A stretch of 63,906 nt of DNA, filler included, from Choristocarpus tenellus KU-1152 (taxonomy: Eukaryota > Protista > Phaeophyceae): the NCBI GenBank assembly GCA_964200185.2. It is 10 parts of 10 records of this genome, joined end to end, with 100 filler letters (N's around TTAATTAATTAA, not from the genome) between each part and the next. Parts side by side here need not be neighbours in the genome. Positions count along the whole stretch, not along the records: positions 12,438 to 21,774 come from CAXNAD020003765.1; 9 more parts are not named here. One strand, written 5' to 3'. This document shows positions 12,338 to 22,949 of this stretch, piece after piece. Both the position numbers and the translations under genes were made by a program. Positions within the stretch are counted from its first letter, which is position 1, and every line of letters starts with the position of its first letter. The notes under the pieces are model-generated. The model was not told the DNA's origin and did no database searches. It was given only the letters and a program-made list of their open reading frames with translations.

Positions 12338-12930
12338 NNNNNNNNNNNNNNNNNNNNNNNNNNNNNNNNNNNNNNNNNNNNTTAATTAATTAANNNNNNN
12401 NNNNNNNNNNNNNNNNNNNNNNNNNNNNNNNNNNNNNCATACAACCAATATCAACCCAACCTACCACCACTGATCCAACTCAAGACCCCCCCCCCCTCCC
12501 CCCCTTCTCCACACCATTAACAACACTGACCTTCCAAGAACACAAGGAACTCAGCCCCACTGTTGCCCCAACCAGTATCAACCTACCTTACCCACTACCA
12601 TACCTGGTCAAGATCACCACCCTGACTTGCCCTTACCTTGCCAACATACCCACACAGCATCCTACCACCCACCTCACCCACCCAGAAGCTCCTTCCAGCA
12701 TACCTATACAAGTCCCTCCAAAATCACCCCACCCAAACACATGACCACATGAACCATCGCCCACATTCGCCACCCACTCAGCTCCCTTAAGCTGATGTTA
12801 AAATATAGGCTACTCATTCGATTTGCTTTGATATGATACAGCATCGTAAGTCCACACTGAATGTTGATTTGTCCATTGCAATGAGAGGAGCATATAAGCC
12901 CTTACACTTCACCATGCAGGGAAGATGAGT

Positions 12931-13191
12931 GAGTCAAACAAAGAGAGGTGCCCAGGGATATATTTTAAGGATGTTAACGAATGTATGTAAATTTCGACAT
13001 TTTGTACCAATGCATCTATGGAATTTTCTAGACTCCATGGAATTTTTTCAAACGATAGAGAAATCAACTCTCTCATATCAATTGTAGTACTTTATCCATC
13101 CATAGAACTATGGGTGAATCGAAGAAGACTAATAAAGTGGCTCTCTATGCAAAACGGTTAAAACCTGAGTACCTCTCGTTTACTTTGGTTC
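12931..13191. mobile_element. MITE family C copy (about 260 bp)
   Basis: GAGTCAAAC...GAGAGGTGCCCAGG ... CCTGAGTACCTCTCGTTTACTTTGGTTC; internal AGAAATCAAC block shared with the copies at 33584 and 54273. Confidence 0.8.
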
Positions 13192-13203
13192 ACCAAGTGT
13201 CCT

Positions 13204-13234
13204 ATTACTGGAGATTACTGGAGATTACTGGAGA
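13204..13234. repeat. Short tandem repeat (ATTACTGGAG)x3
   Basis: Read directly from the sequence. Confidence 0.85.
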
Positions 13235-14136
13235 TGGGTGCCTCGTGTCCATTTTCATGTAAGTTCTATGGTACTCTCCACAATCAACCCTTATTTTCAC
13301 AAAACCGAGCGGACCTCTATTATTAGAGTGTTCATTATTTGACAAATATTTTGGACACGCGATTGTACAAACCCCTGAACAAAATTGGTCTTGTTTGAGA
13401 GAAGATCTATTGCCACTAAGCAGATATTGCGCTGGACCAGAGCAGGAGGAAAGGCATGGGGGAAGGGGCTATGCCTGGGTAGCAGGGGTGGACTGTGCTA
13501 GTGCGGGTCTGTGCCTCCCTGCGCAAAATATGGTGATCGAGCTAAGCCATAAATTTTAGTTGGGTGAATGGCTGGCAAACCAGTCATCAGCCCATCTCCT
13601 CCTAAAATCTTGTGCTAGACCTTCCTGGGCATCGCTCATCGGCAATGGAACCTCTTGCCACTTCGATTATGGTCAATTAAGCGCTTTGTTGTGGTATAGT
13701 GACAGGAGAACACTAGTGAACAATCCGGAGTGGTTACCAGGTGGCCTGTTCGGATGATCGAAACCATACTTTCATTAGAAAGAGTCTAGCGTTGATAGGG
13801 TTCGAACCCTTCAAATGCATGCAGGGATGATCAAACCATCCCTCCATTCCATGACCATGTTCTTATCCGTTCTTTCTACTACCACCACTACAATTTGTAT
13901 TGTATTATGGATAGACGAACAATCTCCCAGCCAATCAACAGTCACCAGCAATATATGATGTGTCATAAATGTATGAGTTAGTCTTGAAGTTTTTGAAATT
14001 GTGTTCTTCCCTTTCTCCTGTGTGTCTCCTTGCCCATCTCACCTTATCCCCATCCACGCTCCAATCTCCTGCTTTTCTCATATCGTGTCTTCTGCATTTC
14101 GTGCAGCTATCTACTCAGGGTCAACATCAAAATACC

Positions 14137-15240
14137 ATGTCAAACGATAAATGTCAAATGAGCGAAATGGCGAGGCGCCGAGCCCAGCACGCAACTCGAA
14201 GGATGATAACGTTTGGTTTAGGAGTGGCTTCACGTGTTGCCTCCCTTACCAAAAATCCGGAGTTGGAGCTTGGAGTGAATCACTGGCAGTGCGATCCTGC
14301 AAGCATGGATCTATCTCTTGGGCCCATGCCCGAGTACGTGTTATGCTACCTATTCTCGTTTCTGGATGCCAAATCGCTGTGTACCGTCCGCCGACTCAGC
14401 GTTGGCATGTTTCGCGCGACAGATCACTGCTCCGAGACACTGTGGGGAACCCTGCTCAGACAAGACTTTCCTGTGGGACACAACCTCGAGGTCTCCAACC
14501 ATCACCAGGAGTATGTGATAAACGTGAAGCTGCGTGCTACAGACGAGGTTAGCAATTTCCATGCCACCCGTCGAGCCAGGCAGAGTCTGTACGAGTATTC
14601 CTCACGTTTTGGGGGCGTAATAGGCCTGGTTTGCGACCTTGGGTATGTAGAGGACGCGCGTGTAGCTCGCGCTATCTCCAACAAGAGACGTCCAGCAATG
14701 TCCACAGCGATCGTTGACAACTCGAACGTTATTTGTGACTTTCGTAAGCGGGGCTATTTCTCTGGGCCGCTCAACTTCCTTCCAGTTGACGCTATCAGCT
14801 TGGAGGGATCATTGCCTCCGATCCCTGGAGGACCTCACCGCGGGTTCTTGGGTTATGCGGTGGATTTGGTGCGCCTCAGACCCGAGCATGAAATGCTTCG
14901 GCTTACGGTGTTATTCGCCGCTCTCAAGGACCTTGCGGTGTTCGAGACTTGTGCGGATGCAGAGGAGGCCCGTCGTCGGTCGGGGCAGCACCGTCTACTC
15001 TATTGTGCTCTCGACTTTGGAGATGGCGATCCTGTTGAAAGGGAAAGGGGTTTGGCTGTTGCGCACATTAGCCATTGGGGATTTCGACCTCTCTTTGACG
15101 TTGAAGGGGCAAAGCATTGGGGTAGAGCCTTTAATAAAGGCTGGGGCGGGGTTGAGAACACTTTGCTTCAACTTGAGAAGACGGTTGAGGACGCCCAGAG
15201 CTCTCTTGCGTACATCAGGTATGGTGGTGGGATATCATAG
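14137..15240 (+). CDS. F-box protein fused to a DMS3/GMI1/SMCHD1-type SMC hinge domain; uninterrupted ORF of about 367 aa (frame open from 13969)
   Basis: F-box at about 14314-14469: LGPMPEYVLCYLFSFLDAKSLCTVRRLS...SETLWGTLLRQDF. Hinge-like region at about 14611-15054: GVIGLVCDLGYVED...AISNKR...MSTAIVD...LNFLPVDAI...GFLGYAVDLVRL...LRLTVLFAALKDLAVFETCADAEEARR...ALD. A possible splice acceptor at 14105-14106 leaves the true start uncertain. Confidence 0.8.
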   Translation: MSNDKCQMSEMARRRAQHATRRMITFGLGVASRVASLTKNPELELGVNHWQCDPASMDLSLGPMPEYVLCYLFSFLDAKSLCTVRRLSVGMFRATDHCSETLWGTLLRQDFPVGHNLEVSNHHQEYVINVKLRATDEVSNFHATRRARQSLYEYSSRFGGVIGLVCDLGYVEDARVARAISNKRRPAMSTAIVDNSNVICDFRKRGYFSGPLNFLPVDAISLEGSLPPIPGGPHRGFLGYAVDLVRLRPEHEMLRLTVLFAALKDLAVFETCADAEEARRRSGQHRLLYCALDFGDGDPVERERGLAVAHISHWGFRPLFDVEGAKHWGRAFNKGWGGVENTLLQLEKTVEDAQSSLAYIRYGGGIS

Positions 15241-16527
15241 GCTGTGGAAGAAGTATCAGAAGACGAGGTTCATGGCATATTTACCAGGCATTTTGTGGAG
15301 GTTATCGTTTCTTGTCACTGCTATTGGAGGAAAACAAATTACGGATGATACCACCACCAGAACCCTCAACGAACTTGATAATTTTCAATGTTTACGTATG
15401 TTACTCTTGTTACCTGCAGGGGCTGTTGTGTTCGCATGATGTACAGGTTTTGACGCTATGAGCAATAGTGTGCTGTAGACACACTTTAGCACAACATAGT
15501 CCACATGAAGGGGCTGTTTTTTGTTTCAGTAATGAAGAGTGCTTTGTAGAGAGTGTGTCCGAGGAGTGGCAGGTCTAAAATTGGATGTATGATGCCCGCA
15601 ACCCCAAAAGTATGTGTTGTACATAATGATCACTATGACTCATGATGTGGATCCTAAGTATGGACCATGAGTTGAATCACTGGGAATAGCTGTCATATTG
15701 CATGCATATATGTGTATGCCTTCACATACAGGAGAGTGTAATTCCTTGATTGTGGCAAGTCACCTTCAAATACAATCACTTTCTCACACAATTGTGCAAC
15801 ACACACTATTCTGAACTAACTCTTCACAAACAACTATGCATGCACAGTTCCTAACTAAGGTGATACTTGAACCCTGCTTGACCAGTGGTTCTGTATGTTT
15901 CATAGTACCTCGCTACTGCTAATCCCAGACGCAGGTATACCCAAACACTTCAGAGTATATACTACCACATGTATTCTATACTACCAACTATACATGCACT
16001 GTGATGGACTTTACACCCTGATCATGAGTTGAGTAGACATAAATAGATTGTATCCAAACAAACCAATTCAACCTCGGCCTCCACAGCACAACCATCCACA
16101 ACGATGGCAGATGAGCAAGCAAAAATCTGGTAGACTATCTTGTACTCTGCTTCTCACACACAACTTCCAGGATGGAAACACAAAAAATAGTGATTGAAAG
16201 GCATGCCAAGGAAAAATATAAACGATCCAGGGAAGAGGGAACATGGATATGAAAATCTTCATGTACACAAATGGAATATCCCATGCATCACATTGAGCCA
16301 GTGTAAGGAGAGGACCACTCATCCTCCAATTTCCCCTACTTCCACAACCTTCTGAAAAAGACACAAATCTTACTCTCAAGCCAAGACATACCATTCACCT
16401 TGCCACGTGGGCATGACCACCCTGGAGGAAATCCAATAACACACAGTGAATCACTCGAGAAGCAAGCGACACTGTCTATTGTGAAAGGAACTGATCCTCC
16501 ATACACACTAGCCAGTTACTACAAGGC

Positions 16528-19500
16528 CTATCCTATCTTCTCAGTCTCTCGAGGAGCTCGTGGTGGTCGTAGTTCCCACATCTCCTTCCGCTGACTATCC
16601 TGCACCTCAAGACTTTGGTAGTAGGCCACTACACGAGGGTGAGCACGTATCTTTGAGGCATCAACACTCCCAACTATGGACAGACCCTCAAGAGAGCGCA
16701 CCCGTGAGAGGGCTACATACGCCTGCCCATATTCAAATGTTCGTGAGAGGCAAATGCTGGCTAGATCAAGAGACCTGTTCCAGGGGCGGGGCAGAAGGAG
16801 GAAGGTCAGGGATTCATGCGTATGAGGTCTTTCATGTGGTCTTTGTCAAAGCAGTCCCAAGACATGAACTAATATATTGGTGGTAGGACCACAATGAGCA
16901 GTACTAAATTCGGTTACAACCTTCTTCTAATTTCTAACTTGTATCAGTAGTACACAGTAACACACAGTGCACACAAACAGCACAATCTGTAGTCTATCCT
17001 ACAGAGGGCAGCCGTGAAGATCCCATATAGTGTGCATGGGTCCCGATGTAGTGCTGCCATTGAAGGCTCCAATTATTTTCTGACAAGTCGAACAGTTATC
17101 CTTTGCTTTGAGGTAGACTGCGGCTGACAATTGCAAAAACAGAGCTATAAAAATAATGTGATCGTAAGTAAATGGCTAGATTATGTTTCTAGTGCAACAC
17201 TACTCTAACTAACAAGTAGGGTAGGTCAGGCTATGGCGGTGCCAATTCGGAATCATTATCTACATGTGGAGATCATGTACTCGACTGAGAGTAGGGTAGT
17301 AATGAAACCAACCAAGTCCATTCCACACTGTCTTTTCCTATTGGGCACTACCAGGGAAGGATTTCGTACTCAAGAGTAAATGTGGAGTGCATCTCAGTTC
17401 ACCTCACCCGATATTCTAGTAAATCATACATGGGCCACATATACACCCTGGAGTACTCTGAAGAGTGCACAGAAATATTAGATCAGTTTCAGATAATGAT
17501 GGTACTCGGTAATGCTTGTGTTATCTGTACACTGTACTTCACTTTCCACACAACCATACATTCATACATACATACATATACACACACACACGCACCTTGT
17601 CGAGATTTAAGCTTGAAGCACACCAAATACAAGTATCACAACAGTAGGGTACAAGTGCAACCGCAGAAGGAATAATTATTTAGTCACTTTGTCAATAAAA
17701 GATATAAAAAATTTAATTGAACCAAGTATCATCCAACCAGAATTGAACAACTATGGAAGGGCACGGGTGCATAGGAGACAGAGTAGGCACTGTTGACTCA
17801 GCCTATACTCGACCATATGCCCAACTATATATTCCCTTACATGCCCTGACTCTTGTGCACACTCATGGCCCATGCGAGGGAGATTGGTAGCTGCTTCCGA
17901 GAGGCAACTGTCACCCCCCCTACCTCAAGAGAGAAAGTCTCAGGCCTGTCAAGGTGGTGAAAAATGAAACCCCCACAGACCGCAGTTAAGACAGACATGC
18001 ACATCAATCACAGCAGCAAAGACATCAATAAAAGGTGTGGGAGATCAAACGGATTGGGGATGGTTGCACAGGGGATGTATGCAGATGTACGTTGGGAGAG
18101 GGGAAGCCAGAGGTGGATCTTCTGATAGCTACAGCACTTGATGATAAGTAGTTTGGGTGCTAACAACTTGATGTGAGTGAAAATGGAAGTATCAGGACAT
18201 ATTGGAGTGATCGACAGTTGTGATGGGCGGAGAGGGTTGTACTGTGTTTAATCACCAACTGCCATTTTTTTTTCACCTCACATTTTTTCAAATGTCTTAG
18301 CATATATTTAAAGCAGTAGACCCCACAAGACCCCATTTCAAGAACACTAGGTTCATAATATTTCTCGTGGTCATTTATCAAAAACCAACTGTGAAGTGAT
18401 AAACTGCAACACACTGCACAAACACCCTACTTAAGAATGCCTTCTAGTCTACCAACTCATTGCTCCTCAAAATACACAAACCACCACCGTGCACAGACCC
18501 CTCCTCCTCGGATCTTTCCTGCTACATTCACACACCAAAACTATTTACTCACCAACACACCCGAACAAAGCACACCTTCAACAATCAATCCTCATTGAAA
18601 ATCCAACAAATGTTCAAAAACAGATTCCCTCCAATAGCCTAGGGGAATCCCAGCCTCCTCCCTCCATTGCCCTCGGGCACCCACCTAAGGACCTCCTCTA
18701 GCCCAGAGGCAAACCTAACTACGGGGAGACTTGCTCCGCTACCAGTAAAGCGGACAACTGCCCCCCTAGCACCATTCACCAGGCCACGCTCACTGTTCAC
18801 CTTCTTGACAAGAATGACCTGATGGTCAGCAAAAACACAACACAAGCGAAGTACGATATGACCCCTATCGGAGGATGGTTGTGGGTGGGGTTGCTGACCA
18901 GAAGGAGAGTTCTCGGGAGAGGAGATATTGGGTTCCCCCTGGAGAGAGACTGCAATAACATGCTAATAGCTACAGTGTATGCGTTTGTATTTGTGTATAT
19001 GCTGGTAGGGTTAGGGCACAAAAAGAGAGGACAGAATCTTGAGGTGTGCTCGGGGTATAGACATGGTGGAACTGTGGGAGGAGTAAATCCATCTCTCCTT
19101 ATGTCTATCAGAGTCTAAAGCCTGTTGTGTATCAAACGGTCTACATCACTATATGTTGACATGCGTTGCCAGAAATACATGGTGGCACAAATGTGAGAGA
19201 GGTGTAGAATGTGGGATGGAGGGCAACCCCCCCGATCTCCAGACACAAAAATAATCTCCCTTTCCTGTCACCTCACTTGATCAAGCTGTGTTTACCTGTA
19301 AGCACCCTTTCCACCAAGCACCCTCTCAACCCCCCCACCCCTTCCCCCCTCTGCTGTCCTGTCCCTTTTCTGACACCCTGGAGTATTGTGGGGTGTTCAC
19401 CCTCCCCTTCAATAGATGCCGCCGTCCTCTTGCCTCATACAAACAATTAAAGGTGCCCTAACAAGAAACCAATGACCACCTACCTTCAATTCTTAGAGTT

Positions 19501-20937
19501 ACACGCTCCGGCAAAGACAGTTAAGAATGGGTAGAACAAATTCAAATAGCCCGAGTTGCTATTGGAGCAGTGCTCACAAATCGAGGACATCATATTTGAA
19601 ATAGTATTTACTTCACCTGGAAGGGATGTACTTTGGGTACCCAGTCATACTTATGAGCAAAATAACAGAAGCTAAAGAAACCATTGCCATCTTGCAGATA
19701 ACTTATTTGGGACTCTCTAAACATACAATTGCTCATGCTATACCTGCAGAACTCATACTGCTTCACATGGCACACAGGAGGAACCAATGGAGACCATTTC
19801 GGACAACCAAATACACAGAGACTTACATTAGGCTGGCAGCAGCGCTCAGGCTACTTCATAGGTCACTCAGAGGTACTAGGTTTATAGTGCAATAGAGACT
19901 TATCTGGACCAAAATGGGCGAAAGCTCATGCCATACTTGGGGTAGCTCTCATACCGATTTGTGCTATGCTTAGATGTACCACCAACACAACTAGTAGATC
20001 GCATCACTTGGGGGCAACAACAACAACATAACAAGAAGAATTAAAATTAAAAAAACATCTTAAACTGGTTCCTGATTGGAGGGAACTGGAGCTATGTTTA
20101 GCACAAACCAACGACTGTTGACTGCAGGAAAGAAGGCAAAAACAATCAACGCTCCCCACCTGTGCCCCTGCCTTGAGCTTGAGCAGCGCAGGGGCAGAAC
20201 AGGTGTCATCAAGCTGGCGAAGGAAAGCAGCCTGTCCACTATCCACTGCCCGGTATGAATACCGTCGTCCTTCCAGCAGCTCCAGGCGCTACAGGGGAGG
20301 AGATGGAGGATGTGAGGAACTGGGGCGGGGAGTCGGAGGTTATGACAGGGTGTACTTATAACAGGGATCCAAAAAAACTTATACATCTGGTTGACATCGC
20401 CAATTTGTCTGCACTGTCCCCTCAAAAAAAAAAAAATACTGTCAAGTGGTGACACTTTGCAACACCCACGAAAAGTGACCTACCTACTGCAACCATCTCT
20501 ACATCATAAGACACAATACGCTCGTACAGAAAAAAAGCAGGCCACTGAGAATTTTCTCAGAATTTGCAAGTTCACACTCCCATCCATGTCTCGACTAACT
20601 TTCATTTACTACTCATACCTCCGAATTTGCTAAACAAAACAAAAATAGCACACAAACTGGGAAATTTCCCGGAATTCCCTAGTGCATACATACCATACCC
20701 TGTACAGTACAGTAACCCTTTTCACCTCCCCCTCGAGCACTCTTAATCTTTAAAAACAAAAACCTAAAACAAAAACTCTTCTATTACCTCTGAATTTACT
20801 TGGGCAACATCGTCCCTGTGCGTGAGGAGGCGTGTCTCCATGATACCGTGACTCCTGTCCAGGGTACGCCCCTTGCACTCCTCCAGTGCCTCCAAGACCT
20901 CAGGAGTGCATTCGCCCCACCGAATGCGATCCAAGAG
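16528..20937 (-). CDS. PIF1: PIF1 5'-3' DNA helicase, 3' part; exons 20937-20788, 20288-20160, 18818-18685, 17945-17841, 16774-16528
   Basis: Spliced product LLDRIRWGECT...LKLKAGAQ|VILVKKVNSERGLVNGARGAVV...RKQLPISLAWAMSVHKSQGM|SLD...FEYGQAYVALSRVRSLEGL contains the Pif1 signature and motifs V and VI. All junctions GT-AG and in phase. Confidence 0.95.
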
Positions 20938-21149
20938 CTACGTTAACAAAAACAATAAAAAAACAATAAAAAAAAAGGAGACAGAGAGAGAGGGATAGCT
21001 GAGGGAATGATAACAATACACACACAGGGACTGGTGGCGGCGGCGGTCGTCGAGGGAGGAATCTGCTCGGAATCATTATCGCGATGTAATGATTGGCTCT
21101 GTTTATTTTATTTTTTTTGACTAAACGGGAATTCTTCCCCCCCTCCCCC

Positions 21150-21182
<33 letters not shown>

Positions 21183-21359
21183 TGCATTCGAGCGTAATTT
21201 GAAAAACATTCTTATCTTACTGCGAGTTTGTTACGGAAAGGAGGAAATGTGTCATTATCGCCTCGAAATACTGCACCAACTCCACAGTGCAGTCGAGTGC
21301 AATGGTGCACTCATGCGGTTACAGCTTTCATCCTTCAAGCTGCAGAAAAGAGCAAATAT

Positions 21360-21361
<2 letters not shown>

Positions 21362-21402
<41 letters not shown>
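21362..21402. repeat. (CA)n microsatellite; (TA)n tracts also at about 3505-3523, 6426-6448, 21638-21662
   Basis: Read directly from the sequence. Confidence 0.9.
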
Positions 21403-21405
<3 letters not shown>

Positions 21406-22949
21406 TATATACATAGCTGTTGATTTTGTTGCCAAAACGTACAGGAGACAGAGGTAGGACATATTCAACCTGGCATCAGCAATACCTGCAACAATTTATT
21501 ATACACCTCCTCCACCTCTCGGCCACACCTCTCAGCCACACCCCTCTGACCTCGTTCGCTGCTCTTGGAGTGTTCTTTGAATTTGTTCTGTGCTGCAACC
21601 GCGGAAGAAAAAAATAAAGAATTTTCTCTGTCTCTCTCTATATATATATGTATATATATATACATCTTTTATATTCTTTTCCGAATCACAGACCCTGCAA
21701 GCATCAGCACCCAACAACAGGTTCCGCCAAACAGCTTAAATGTTTCACTATATCTACAAAAAAAAAACGATTGANNNNNNNNNNNNNNNNNNNNNNNNNN
21801 NNNNNNNNNNNNNNNNNNTTAATTAATTAANNNNNNNNNNNNNNNNNNNNNNNNNNNNNNNNNNNNNNNNNNNNCAGTGGGAGGGGCTGGACCCACTCAG
21901 GGGTCGGGGGTTGGTTGTACAGGGGAGGAGAGGAGGTAGTATGCTGTGACTCCTTGTGTCTTCACATGCGAGGTAGCTTATAGAATACAAGTCAAGGAGT
22001 TGTGTTCAACTCTGACCTACATATGAACTATACTAAAAGCAGTTGTTCTATAGTCAATGCTGGCACGTTCAGATAGACAGTTGGATGGATCAACAAACAG
22101 GAGTTGCTCAGTTGTACACTGTATGCATGTCAGAGATGAAAAGGCAGGTGAACAGAAGCCGGCGGTGGTAAGGTTTTTCTATATCTGTCAGGATGCTTGA
22201 TTTTTGGAACATGTCAGCACGACTTCAGGGGCGAGTCCAGAAATAAGAGGTGGTGCTGGTATGGAGGTTAAGCAGGATGGCAAGGTGTATGCTACAGAGA
22301 TGAACAATAATATCCAGCAGAGCTCAAACTCCAGACAAGTTGGTCAGAGGGAAACAGCTCTATGAGTCAGTAGGTTTGTAGGGGCAGGAATCACTTGGAA
22401 TCATACTGTACGAACATTGGAGGGATGCCAAGAGCTTGTGTCAGTGAGTAGTCTACTCTTTGGGATTCTTTCTTAACTAGTAAGCATGAGCGTATTGGTG
22501 GGCCTACGTGCAAGGACGAGAGCCAGTACTAGTATCATACAGGTACAGATGGATGGACAAACAGGAAATAAACTTGGTCGAGGTCTCTGGAGGCGTTATT
22601 AGTTATGTTGTTTGCAACGGATGTTTGTGAGAGAGCCAGTACTTGAAACATATAGACATACAAAAAGACAGAAGAAGAGTGGCTAGACAGGAATGGTCTA
22701 TTATATATGATACGTAAGTGAGAGGAACCTATAAAATTGTAAGGGCGCCTATCAGAGAATAGCTCAGTTCCTTCAAACCTGCTCTACACCTACAAGAGGA
22801 GAGACGAGACTCAGCTGGCATCTGGCCACCCAACTTTCAGAGGCATCAAACAATTCAGCCTTGCATCCGCCCGTGCTACCCTAATATTTCTGTCATACCA
22901 ATACAACCCTCCTAGCGTGCTCCCACTCTCCCCTATAGCTATCTCTCAC

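Follow-up and report, generated by a model that had tools for sequence, protein, structure and literature searches.

A conserved and apparently undescribed stramenopile protein family joins an F-box to an SMC-hinge fold without its dimerization hairpin

A gene of the brown alga Choristocarpus tenellus KU-1152 encodes a protein in which an F-box is followed by the fold of an SMC hinge, and this architecture is real, old, conserved and apparently undescribed. The gene lies in the window, by which we mean the whole stretch of DNA that was analyzed (63,906 nucleotides, filler included). Within the part at positions 12438–21774, the one long intronless ORF on the plus strand runs intact from 14137 to 15240, encodes 367 amino acids, and lies in a stretch of raised GC content (0.54, compared with about 0.43). 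The literature outside subscription journals was searched for an F-box combined with an SMC hinge in stramenopiles, including by Ectocarpus locus tags and accessions, and yielded no description; the sequence-only reading of this DNA had likewise known the architecture from no characterized protein. The family goes unmentioned in a recent preprint on SMC evolution, and the ESM Atlas returned no feature match, only generic SMC hinge clusters. Database entries label the members ‘F-box domain-containing protein’ or hypothetical, and automated pipelines flag the F-box and the hinge separately in some of them.

The motifs quoted by the sequence-only reading are all present in the ORF and in order, and neither an ATPase head nor a long coiled coil was detected in its 367 residues, again as that reading had stated. 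The candidate start codons are M1, M8, M11 and M23. The AlphaFold model has a helix at residues 9–38 (pLDDT about 55–70), and the N-terminal helix that precedes the F-box (residues 21–44; 14197–14268, with all features of this gene on the plus strand) is kept in the brown alga Discosporangium mesarthrocarpum: its alignment score of 46 was equaled by none of 2000 shuffles, and the mismatches at the three codon positions number 10, 7 and 15. This helix is possibly a dimerization or localization element. A start at M57, the candidate raised by an RNA-like contig that begins at 14293, is ruled out, because residues 21–44 are conserved as coding sequence beyond chance and the N-terminus upstream of M57 is therefore coding. 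At the other end, the model contains a C-terminal helix (residues 338–362; 15148–15222) that, by analogy with DMS3, is probably the antiparallel partner of the helical arm described below.

A three-helix F-box fold is present near the N-terminus (residues 61–110; 14317–14466), and a two-subdomain SMC-hinge fold of the DMS3/SMCHD1 type follows it (residues 159–293; 14611–15015). Searched as a single sequence against Pfam, the protein scores below threshold for both (F-box at 64–88, E = 0.024; F-box-like at 65–97, E = 0.031; SMC_hinge at 160–277, E = 0.018, below the curated cut-off). Despite these scores, the family profile, AlphaFold, Foldseek and VIA agree on the F-box and the hinge that had been recognized from motifs. 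A 68-member family profile matches F-boxes with E-values from 4e-7 to 7e-6 (FBXO3, 4e-7; FBW7, 5e-7; beta-TrCP, 6e-6), and VIA matches residues 58–133 to FBXO31 (Z = 9.4) and FBXO3 (Z = 9.3), with an rmsd of 2.2–2.3 Å over about 72 residues. The F-box core is well conserved (L76 in 85% of the family, and the closing tryptophan, W103, in 91%) and is modeled with a pLDDT above 90. The proline at F-box position 2, which matters for CUL1 binding (PMC3237615), is present here as P65 and in brown algal members, and is found in 36% of the family. Pfam F-box-like is matched at E = 0.01 or better by only 24 of the 68 members, and one subgroup (P0096, P0114, P0121, P0124, P0132, P0133 and P0116) has the family hinge without a recognizable F-box; the three F-box-less proteins tested form a well-supported subclade in the tree. 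Consequently, with the proline in 36% of members and an F-box-less subclade, SCF assembly may not be universal in the family.

For the hinge, the best single-sequence match in the PDB is the Thermotoga maritima SMC hinge (E = 6e-8), followed by yeast SMC1 (0.005), mouse SMCHD1 (0.01) and DMS3 (0.86). With the 68-member profile, the best PDB match becomes DMS3 (6ois, E = 1.7e-9), the T. maritima hinge scores 1e-5, and mouse SMCHD1 matches more weakly (E = 0.04; structural Z of 7.5–7.8). The AlphaFold model of the protein has a mean pLDDT of 84, and its top 50 Foldseek matches are all hinge structures (E about 1e-7). VIA matches to hinges have Z scores of 10–12.8, including 12.8 for GsSMC and 12.5 for DMS3 (174 residues, 3.1 Å); when two models, that of the protein and that of a distant family member, are compared with DMS3 and SMC hinges, Z ranges from 12.5 to 13.9 and DMS3 is top or tied top (12.5 and 13.9). 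The sequence-only reading had placed a linker of about 45 residues between the two domains; a segment does separate them, but it is about 56 residues long and mostly a helical arm (residues 122–158; 14500–14610), which is confidently modeled and carries the conserved residues Y126, E137 and H/N140 (E137 and H140 in the family alignment). Because both models have a high pTM (0.77 for the 367-residue protein and 0.79 for the distant member), they suggest a single rigid unit of F-box, arm and hinge, with the geometry that substrate receptors usually have.

Comparisons of sequence support a hinge that is nearer to the DMS3/amoebozoan-SMCHD1 type than to canonical SMC, in line with the kinship first proposed. 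In addition to the profile matches, a hidden Markov model of the family hinge scores 43–90 bits against amoebozoan SMCHD1-type hinges and 26 bits against bacterial SMC, and hhalign aligns the family with SMCHD1-type hinges at a probability of 99.9 (E = 2e-31). In a maximum likelihood tree built from 65 hinge regions, family members form one clade (100/98) that groups with SMCHD1-type hinges against bacterial SMC (97/88); the tree has several long branches and was built without plant DMS3/GMI1, animal SMCHD1, eukaryotic SMC1-6 and locus L006. DMS3 and canonical SMC are not told apart by structural Z scores; structure does not contradict the DMS3/SMCHD1 assignment. As a separate observation, the full-length amoebozoan SMCHD1-type GHKL-S5-hinge proteins of Protostelium and dictyostelids (P0139, P0144, P0145 and P0183–P0190) have a hinge HE-LR-T motif in common with the F-box/hinge family.

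The hinge is incomplete at the element through which hinges dimerize. Hinge dimers have two reciprocal interfaces, in which subdomain I of one partner meets subdomain II of the other beside a GX6GX3GG motif, or GX6GX2GG in SMCHD1 (PMC7458401). The DMS3 dimer uses strands 225–229 and 334–338 and is broken by G339E (PMC6718625). The first of these strands is kept in the family: the edge of subdomain I, comprising the F202-R203 helix and the GPxxFxP strand (14740–14784), has residues 210–216 aligned with the first dimer strand of DMS3. The second dimer strand and the region equivalent to G339 are absent. The hhalign alignment ends at the ALD strand (residues 291–294), exactly past which T. maritima SMC, SMC4 and mouse SMCHD1 run on into the glycine hairpin. 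A looser form of the hairpin motif occurs in 14 of 14 SMCHD1-type rows and in 0 of 68 family rows, and the long GX6GX2-3GG pattern has two matches in the family, both downstream in glycine-rich inserts. In place of the hairpin, residues 294–317 (15016–15087) form a short helix and loop that end at R317, conserved in 88% of the family. Both AlphaFold models lack the hairpin; its place is taken by a short helix, modeled with moderate confidence in the 367-residue protein and with a pLDDT of 97–98 in the distant member. Since the hairpin and glycine motif are missing from both alignment and models, a canonical donut-shaped, two-fold hinge homodimer, and hence its DNA-binding pore, is unlikely in this family. 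The sequence-only reading is thus upheld for the hinge fold but not for the completeness of the domain, and its proposal of canonical hinge-to-hinge pairing is not supported as stated, leaving at most a one-sided contact.

The family has also acquired residues of its own. The pair K183-R184 (14683–14688) is basic in 78% and 97% of members, respectively, and never basic in SMCHD1-type hinges; the hinges compared have no basic residues at these positions, which are mostly hydrophobic. Position 203 is basic in 99% of the family and in 36% of SMCHD1-type hinges. Basic positions kept in the family are 183, 184, 203, 248, 255, 264 and 317, while the hinge region as a whole is near neutral, with a median net charge of +1 and a median pI of 7.8 across the family. 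Given this overall neutrality, the basic residues may be points of specific contact more than a surface for general DNA binding; R184 may instead belong to a structural salt bridge that is buried.

An exhaustive search returned 125 clusters at 50% identity, of which the weakest full-length matches are GHKL-S5-hinge (SMCHD1-type) proteins of Protostelium and Dictyostelium; the F-box/hinge family itself accounts for about 100 clusters at 50% identity. An F-box was also scored in 64 of 81 near-full-length hinge-bearing representatives, and several of the others are N-terminally incomplete. The search for the same architecture among stramenopiles, advised by the sequence-only reading, found orthologues in brown algae, the raphidophyte Heterosigma, the oomycete Aphanomyces, the labyrinthulomycete Hondaea and Platysulcus, making the family a natural example of an SMC hinge that lacks its dimerization hairpin and has been maintained across very distant lineages. 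Because all named members are stramenopiles and span deep branches, the gene was likely already present in the stramenopile ancestor; because most members are metagenome proteins, members outside stramenopiles are possible. The same layout is found in Ectocarpus (two paralogues), Hapterophycus and Nemacystus, and a partial Sphacelaria model contains the hinge only. In Platysulcus tardus, one polypeptide (P0038) carries a tandem duplication with hinge regions at 112–304 and 462–653, an F-box before the second hinge and an F-box-like remnant before the first. Viral contigs were searched for a relative, in line with the search of NCLDVs that the sequence-only reading had advised, and none was found.

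The family is under purifying selection. The nearest relative, from Discosporangium, is 59% identical over the aligned part and 67% identical in the hinge core, with a pN of 0.29, a pS of 0.74 and a dN/dS of about 0.10, for which dS is saturated. Introns are absent from the Choristocarpus, Discosporangium and Aphanomyces genes and present in the Ectocarpus copies (L003:10001-13518, two; L020:10001-12815), a distribution that suggests intron gain in the Ectocarpus lineage. The gene is transcribed, which answers the question of expression raised with the sequence. For Heterosigma and Platysulcus, the sequences derive from transcriptomes, and in run X2 a contig at 14293–15683 covers most of the ORF and its downstream flank, indicating presence without strand or level; 15241–15683 is a probable 3′ untranslated region on this strandless evidence. 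Run X2 is not recorded as RNA, and we treat it as RNA-like because an intron of the neighboring PIF1 gene (16772–17839, with CT..AC ends) is spliced out.

Several features of the surroundings deserve record. That neighbor is a multi-exon PIF1 helicase gene on the minus strand (16540–20950), convergent with the F-box/hinge gene; an exon-by-exon search identified its Pif1 2B domain (E = 7e-6), and two downstream minus-strand helicase exons also occur in Discosporangium (L002). Elsewhere, an ARF-like GTPase gene lies head-to-head upstream of the F-box/hinge gene (L003:852-9398, L020:7017-9506 and L011:7029-7595, all on the minus strand), in two Ectocarpus genomes (one copy each, beside different paralogues) and in a distant marine eukaryote, with similar unusual motifs. 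The ARF-like neighbor was not seen in Hondaea, Aphanomyces, L015 or L019, nor within 1.7–2.7 kb in the window and Discosporangium; the two genes are possibly an old divergent gene pair. In all three runs, including the RNA-like one, a second sequence is present that has diverged from the gene: it matches at 14760–14786, where its loose end reads I-Y-D-F-R-K-R-G-M-Y in X2 and X3, and rejoins at 15076. It probably represents a paralogue within this genome. Upstream of the gene, about 12805–13190 is a high-copy repeat (depth of about 1100 compared with 18 in run X1), where loose ends are numerous at 13147 and 13187, and an adjoining 10-bp unit occurs about three times at 13208–13235.

We now turn to what such a protein may do. 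The reading we favor, at chances we judge about even, is that the protein serves SKP1/SCF as a substrate receptor: its hinge, as a monomer, would bind a partner along the vacated edge of subdomain I and present it for ubiquitination. From its structure and from knowledge of F-box families, the F-box would bind SKP1 and, with P65 kept, probably CUL1 as well, while the rigid helical arm would set a fixed distance between F-box and hinge. The hinge would derive from a DMS3/SMCHD1-type protein and, with its hairpin and glycine motif lost, would consequently act as a monomeric recognition module. A strand of the partner may add to the exposed edge at residues 210–216, with K183, R184 and R203 reading its acidic or phosphorylated residues, and the SCF complex would then ubiquitinate the bound protein, which would be degraded or displaced. 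The origin of the hinge suggests a possible nuclear role. A receptor of this kind would enlarge the F-box repertoire by a substrate-recognition domain that is apparently undescribed. If its substrate is an SMC or SMCHD1-type hinge, there would be a new link from proteolysis to chromosome structure; if it is an unrelated degron, the hinge fold would have been reused as a peptide reader. None of the observations connects the protein to gene silencing, chromatin or SMC proteins, as the sequence-only reading had proposed for it. Hosts in which genetics is feasible, Ectocarpus among them, carry the gene, and there the substrate should be directly findable.

A special case of this monomeric-hinge receptor, which we judge unlikely, is one-sided capture of another hinge. 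The subdomain I strand would pair with a subdomain II strand left free where an SMC, SMCHD1-like or DMS3-like hinge is open or unpaired; the receptor would cap that hinge and pass it to SCF, as a means of quality control for hinges or of release from chromatin. Conservation is high in the subdomain I strand and in the helix before it (F202 in 81%, P211 in 75% and F214 in 90% of the family), canonical hinges take open forms with one interface lost (PMC7458401), and partial SMC mimics that regulate SMC complexes exist, such as SMCL-1 (PMC5373644). However, hinge interfaces are partner-specific, and SMCHD1 forms no heterodimer with other mammalian SMCs (PMC7458401). The nearly invariant basic residue at position 203 also suggests that this surface has changed. 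A stramenopile partner of the SMCHD1/DMS3 type was not seen, in searches that are weak for that question; a word-limited search for an SMCHD1-like one returned 11 proteins, and the named full-length ones are amoebozoan. Equally tentative is the fuller version, in which a receptor kept since the stramenopile ancestor finds hinges of cohesin, condensin, SMC5/6 or SMCHD1-like proteins that are open or unpaired, caps them and sends them to degradation, a dedicated proteolytic control of hinge opening or assembly.

FBH1 is a DNA-binding F-box helicase, and comparable logic underlies a less likely reading, in which SCF is anchored to chromatin or a ribonucleoprotein by a hinge that binds DNA or RNA, so that nearby proteins are ubiquitinated. 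SMC and SMCHD1 hinges do bind nucleic acid through basic residues (PMC7458401), and the family keeps the several basic positions listed above. In contrast, the SMCHD1 residues that are important in cells lie along the dimer pore and the glycine motif (PMC7458401), both of which the family has lost, and its near-neutral hinge does not favor such binding.

Less likely again is a role outside SCF, in which the protein binds SKP1 without CUL1, or its F-box is vestigial, and it acts as a scaffold or competitor like some F-box proteins that lack the proline. That residue is missing in about 64% of members, one subclade has no recognizable F-box, and only about a third of the profiled members reach the Pfam F-box-like score given above. 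Against this, the proline is kept here and in brown algal members, and the F-box core is both conserved and confidently modeled. Finally, the sub-threshold single-sequence Pfam scores and an intronless gene in an intron-rich genome might point to motifs that arose by chance, to a pseudogene, or to a viral or lineage-specific fusion without conserved function, but this explanation is dismissed as very improbable by a transcribed family of about 100 clusters across stramenopiles under purifying selection, the PIF1 neighbor common to Discosporangium, the equally intronless Aphanomyces gene and the lack of a match in viral contigs.

Among known systems, DMS3 of the Arabidopsis DDR complex (PDB 6OIS/6OIT), whose partners RDM1, DRD1 and Pol V are plant components, resembles the family in having a single hinge without an ATPase head, short flanking helices, and the GF-G-AV and LR-T motifs. 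Unlike the family, DMS3 has no F-box and dimerizes through two reciprocal strand contacts that end at G339 (PMC6718625), whereas the family has the first dimer strand without the second hairpin. The DMS3 hinge binds proteins, not DNA, and its binding of RDM1 requires the hinge homodimer (PMC6718625). Proteins of the SMCHD1/GMI1 type, with a GHKL ATPase, S5 and C-terminal hinge, share the hinge alignment and tree grouping, but the family lacks the GHKL ATPase, the S5 domain, the long linker and GX6GX2GG. Canonical SMC hinges (T. maritima, Geobacillus stearothermophilus and SMC1-4) have the same fold, by the Foldseek matches and Z scores of 11–13, in proteins whose ABC head, long coiled coil and GX6GX3GG motif the family does not have. 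The F-box/hinge protein is not an orthologue of SMC, SMCHD1/GMI1 or DMS3. SMCL-1 of Caenorhabditis elegans offers a conceptual parallel only: derived from part of an SMC, it binds SMC complexes and regulates them (PMC5373644); it has a dead ATPase head, no hinge and no F-box, and is not homologous to the family. No described F-box protein was found to have an SMC hinge as its C-terminal domain; in overall plan, with an N-terminal F-box and a C-terminal recognition domain, the family resembles the receptors FBXO3, FBXO31, FBW7 and FBH1, and its F-box and extension helix superpose on those of FBXO31 and FBXO3.
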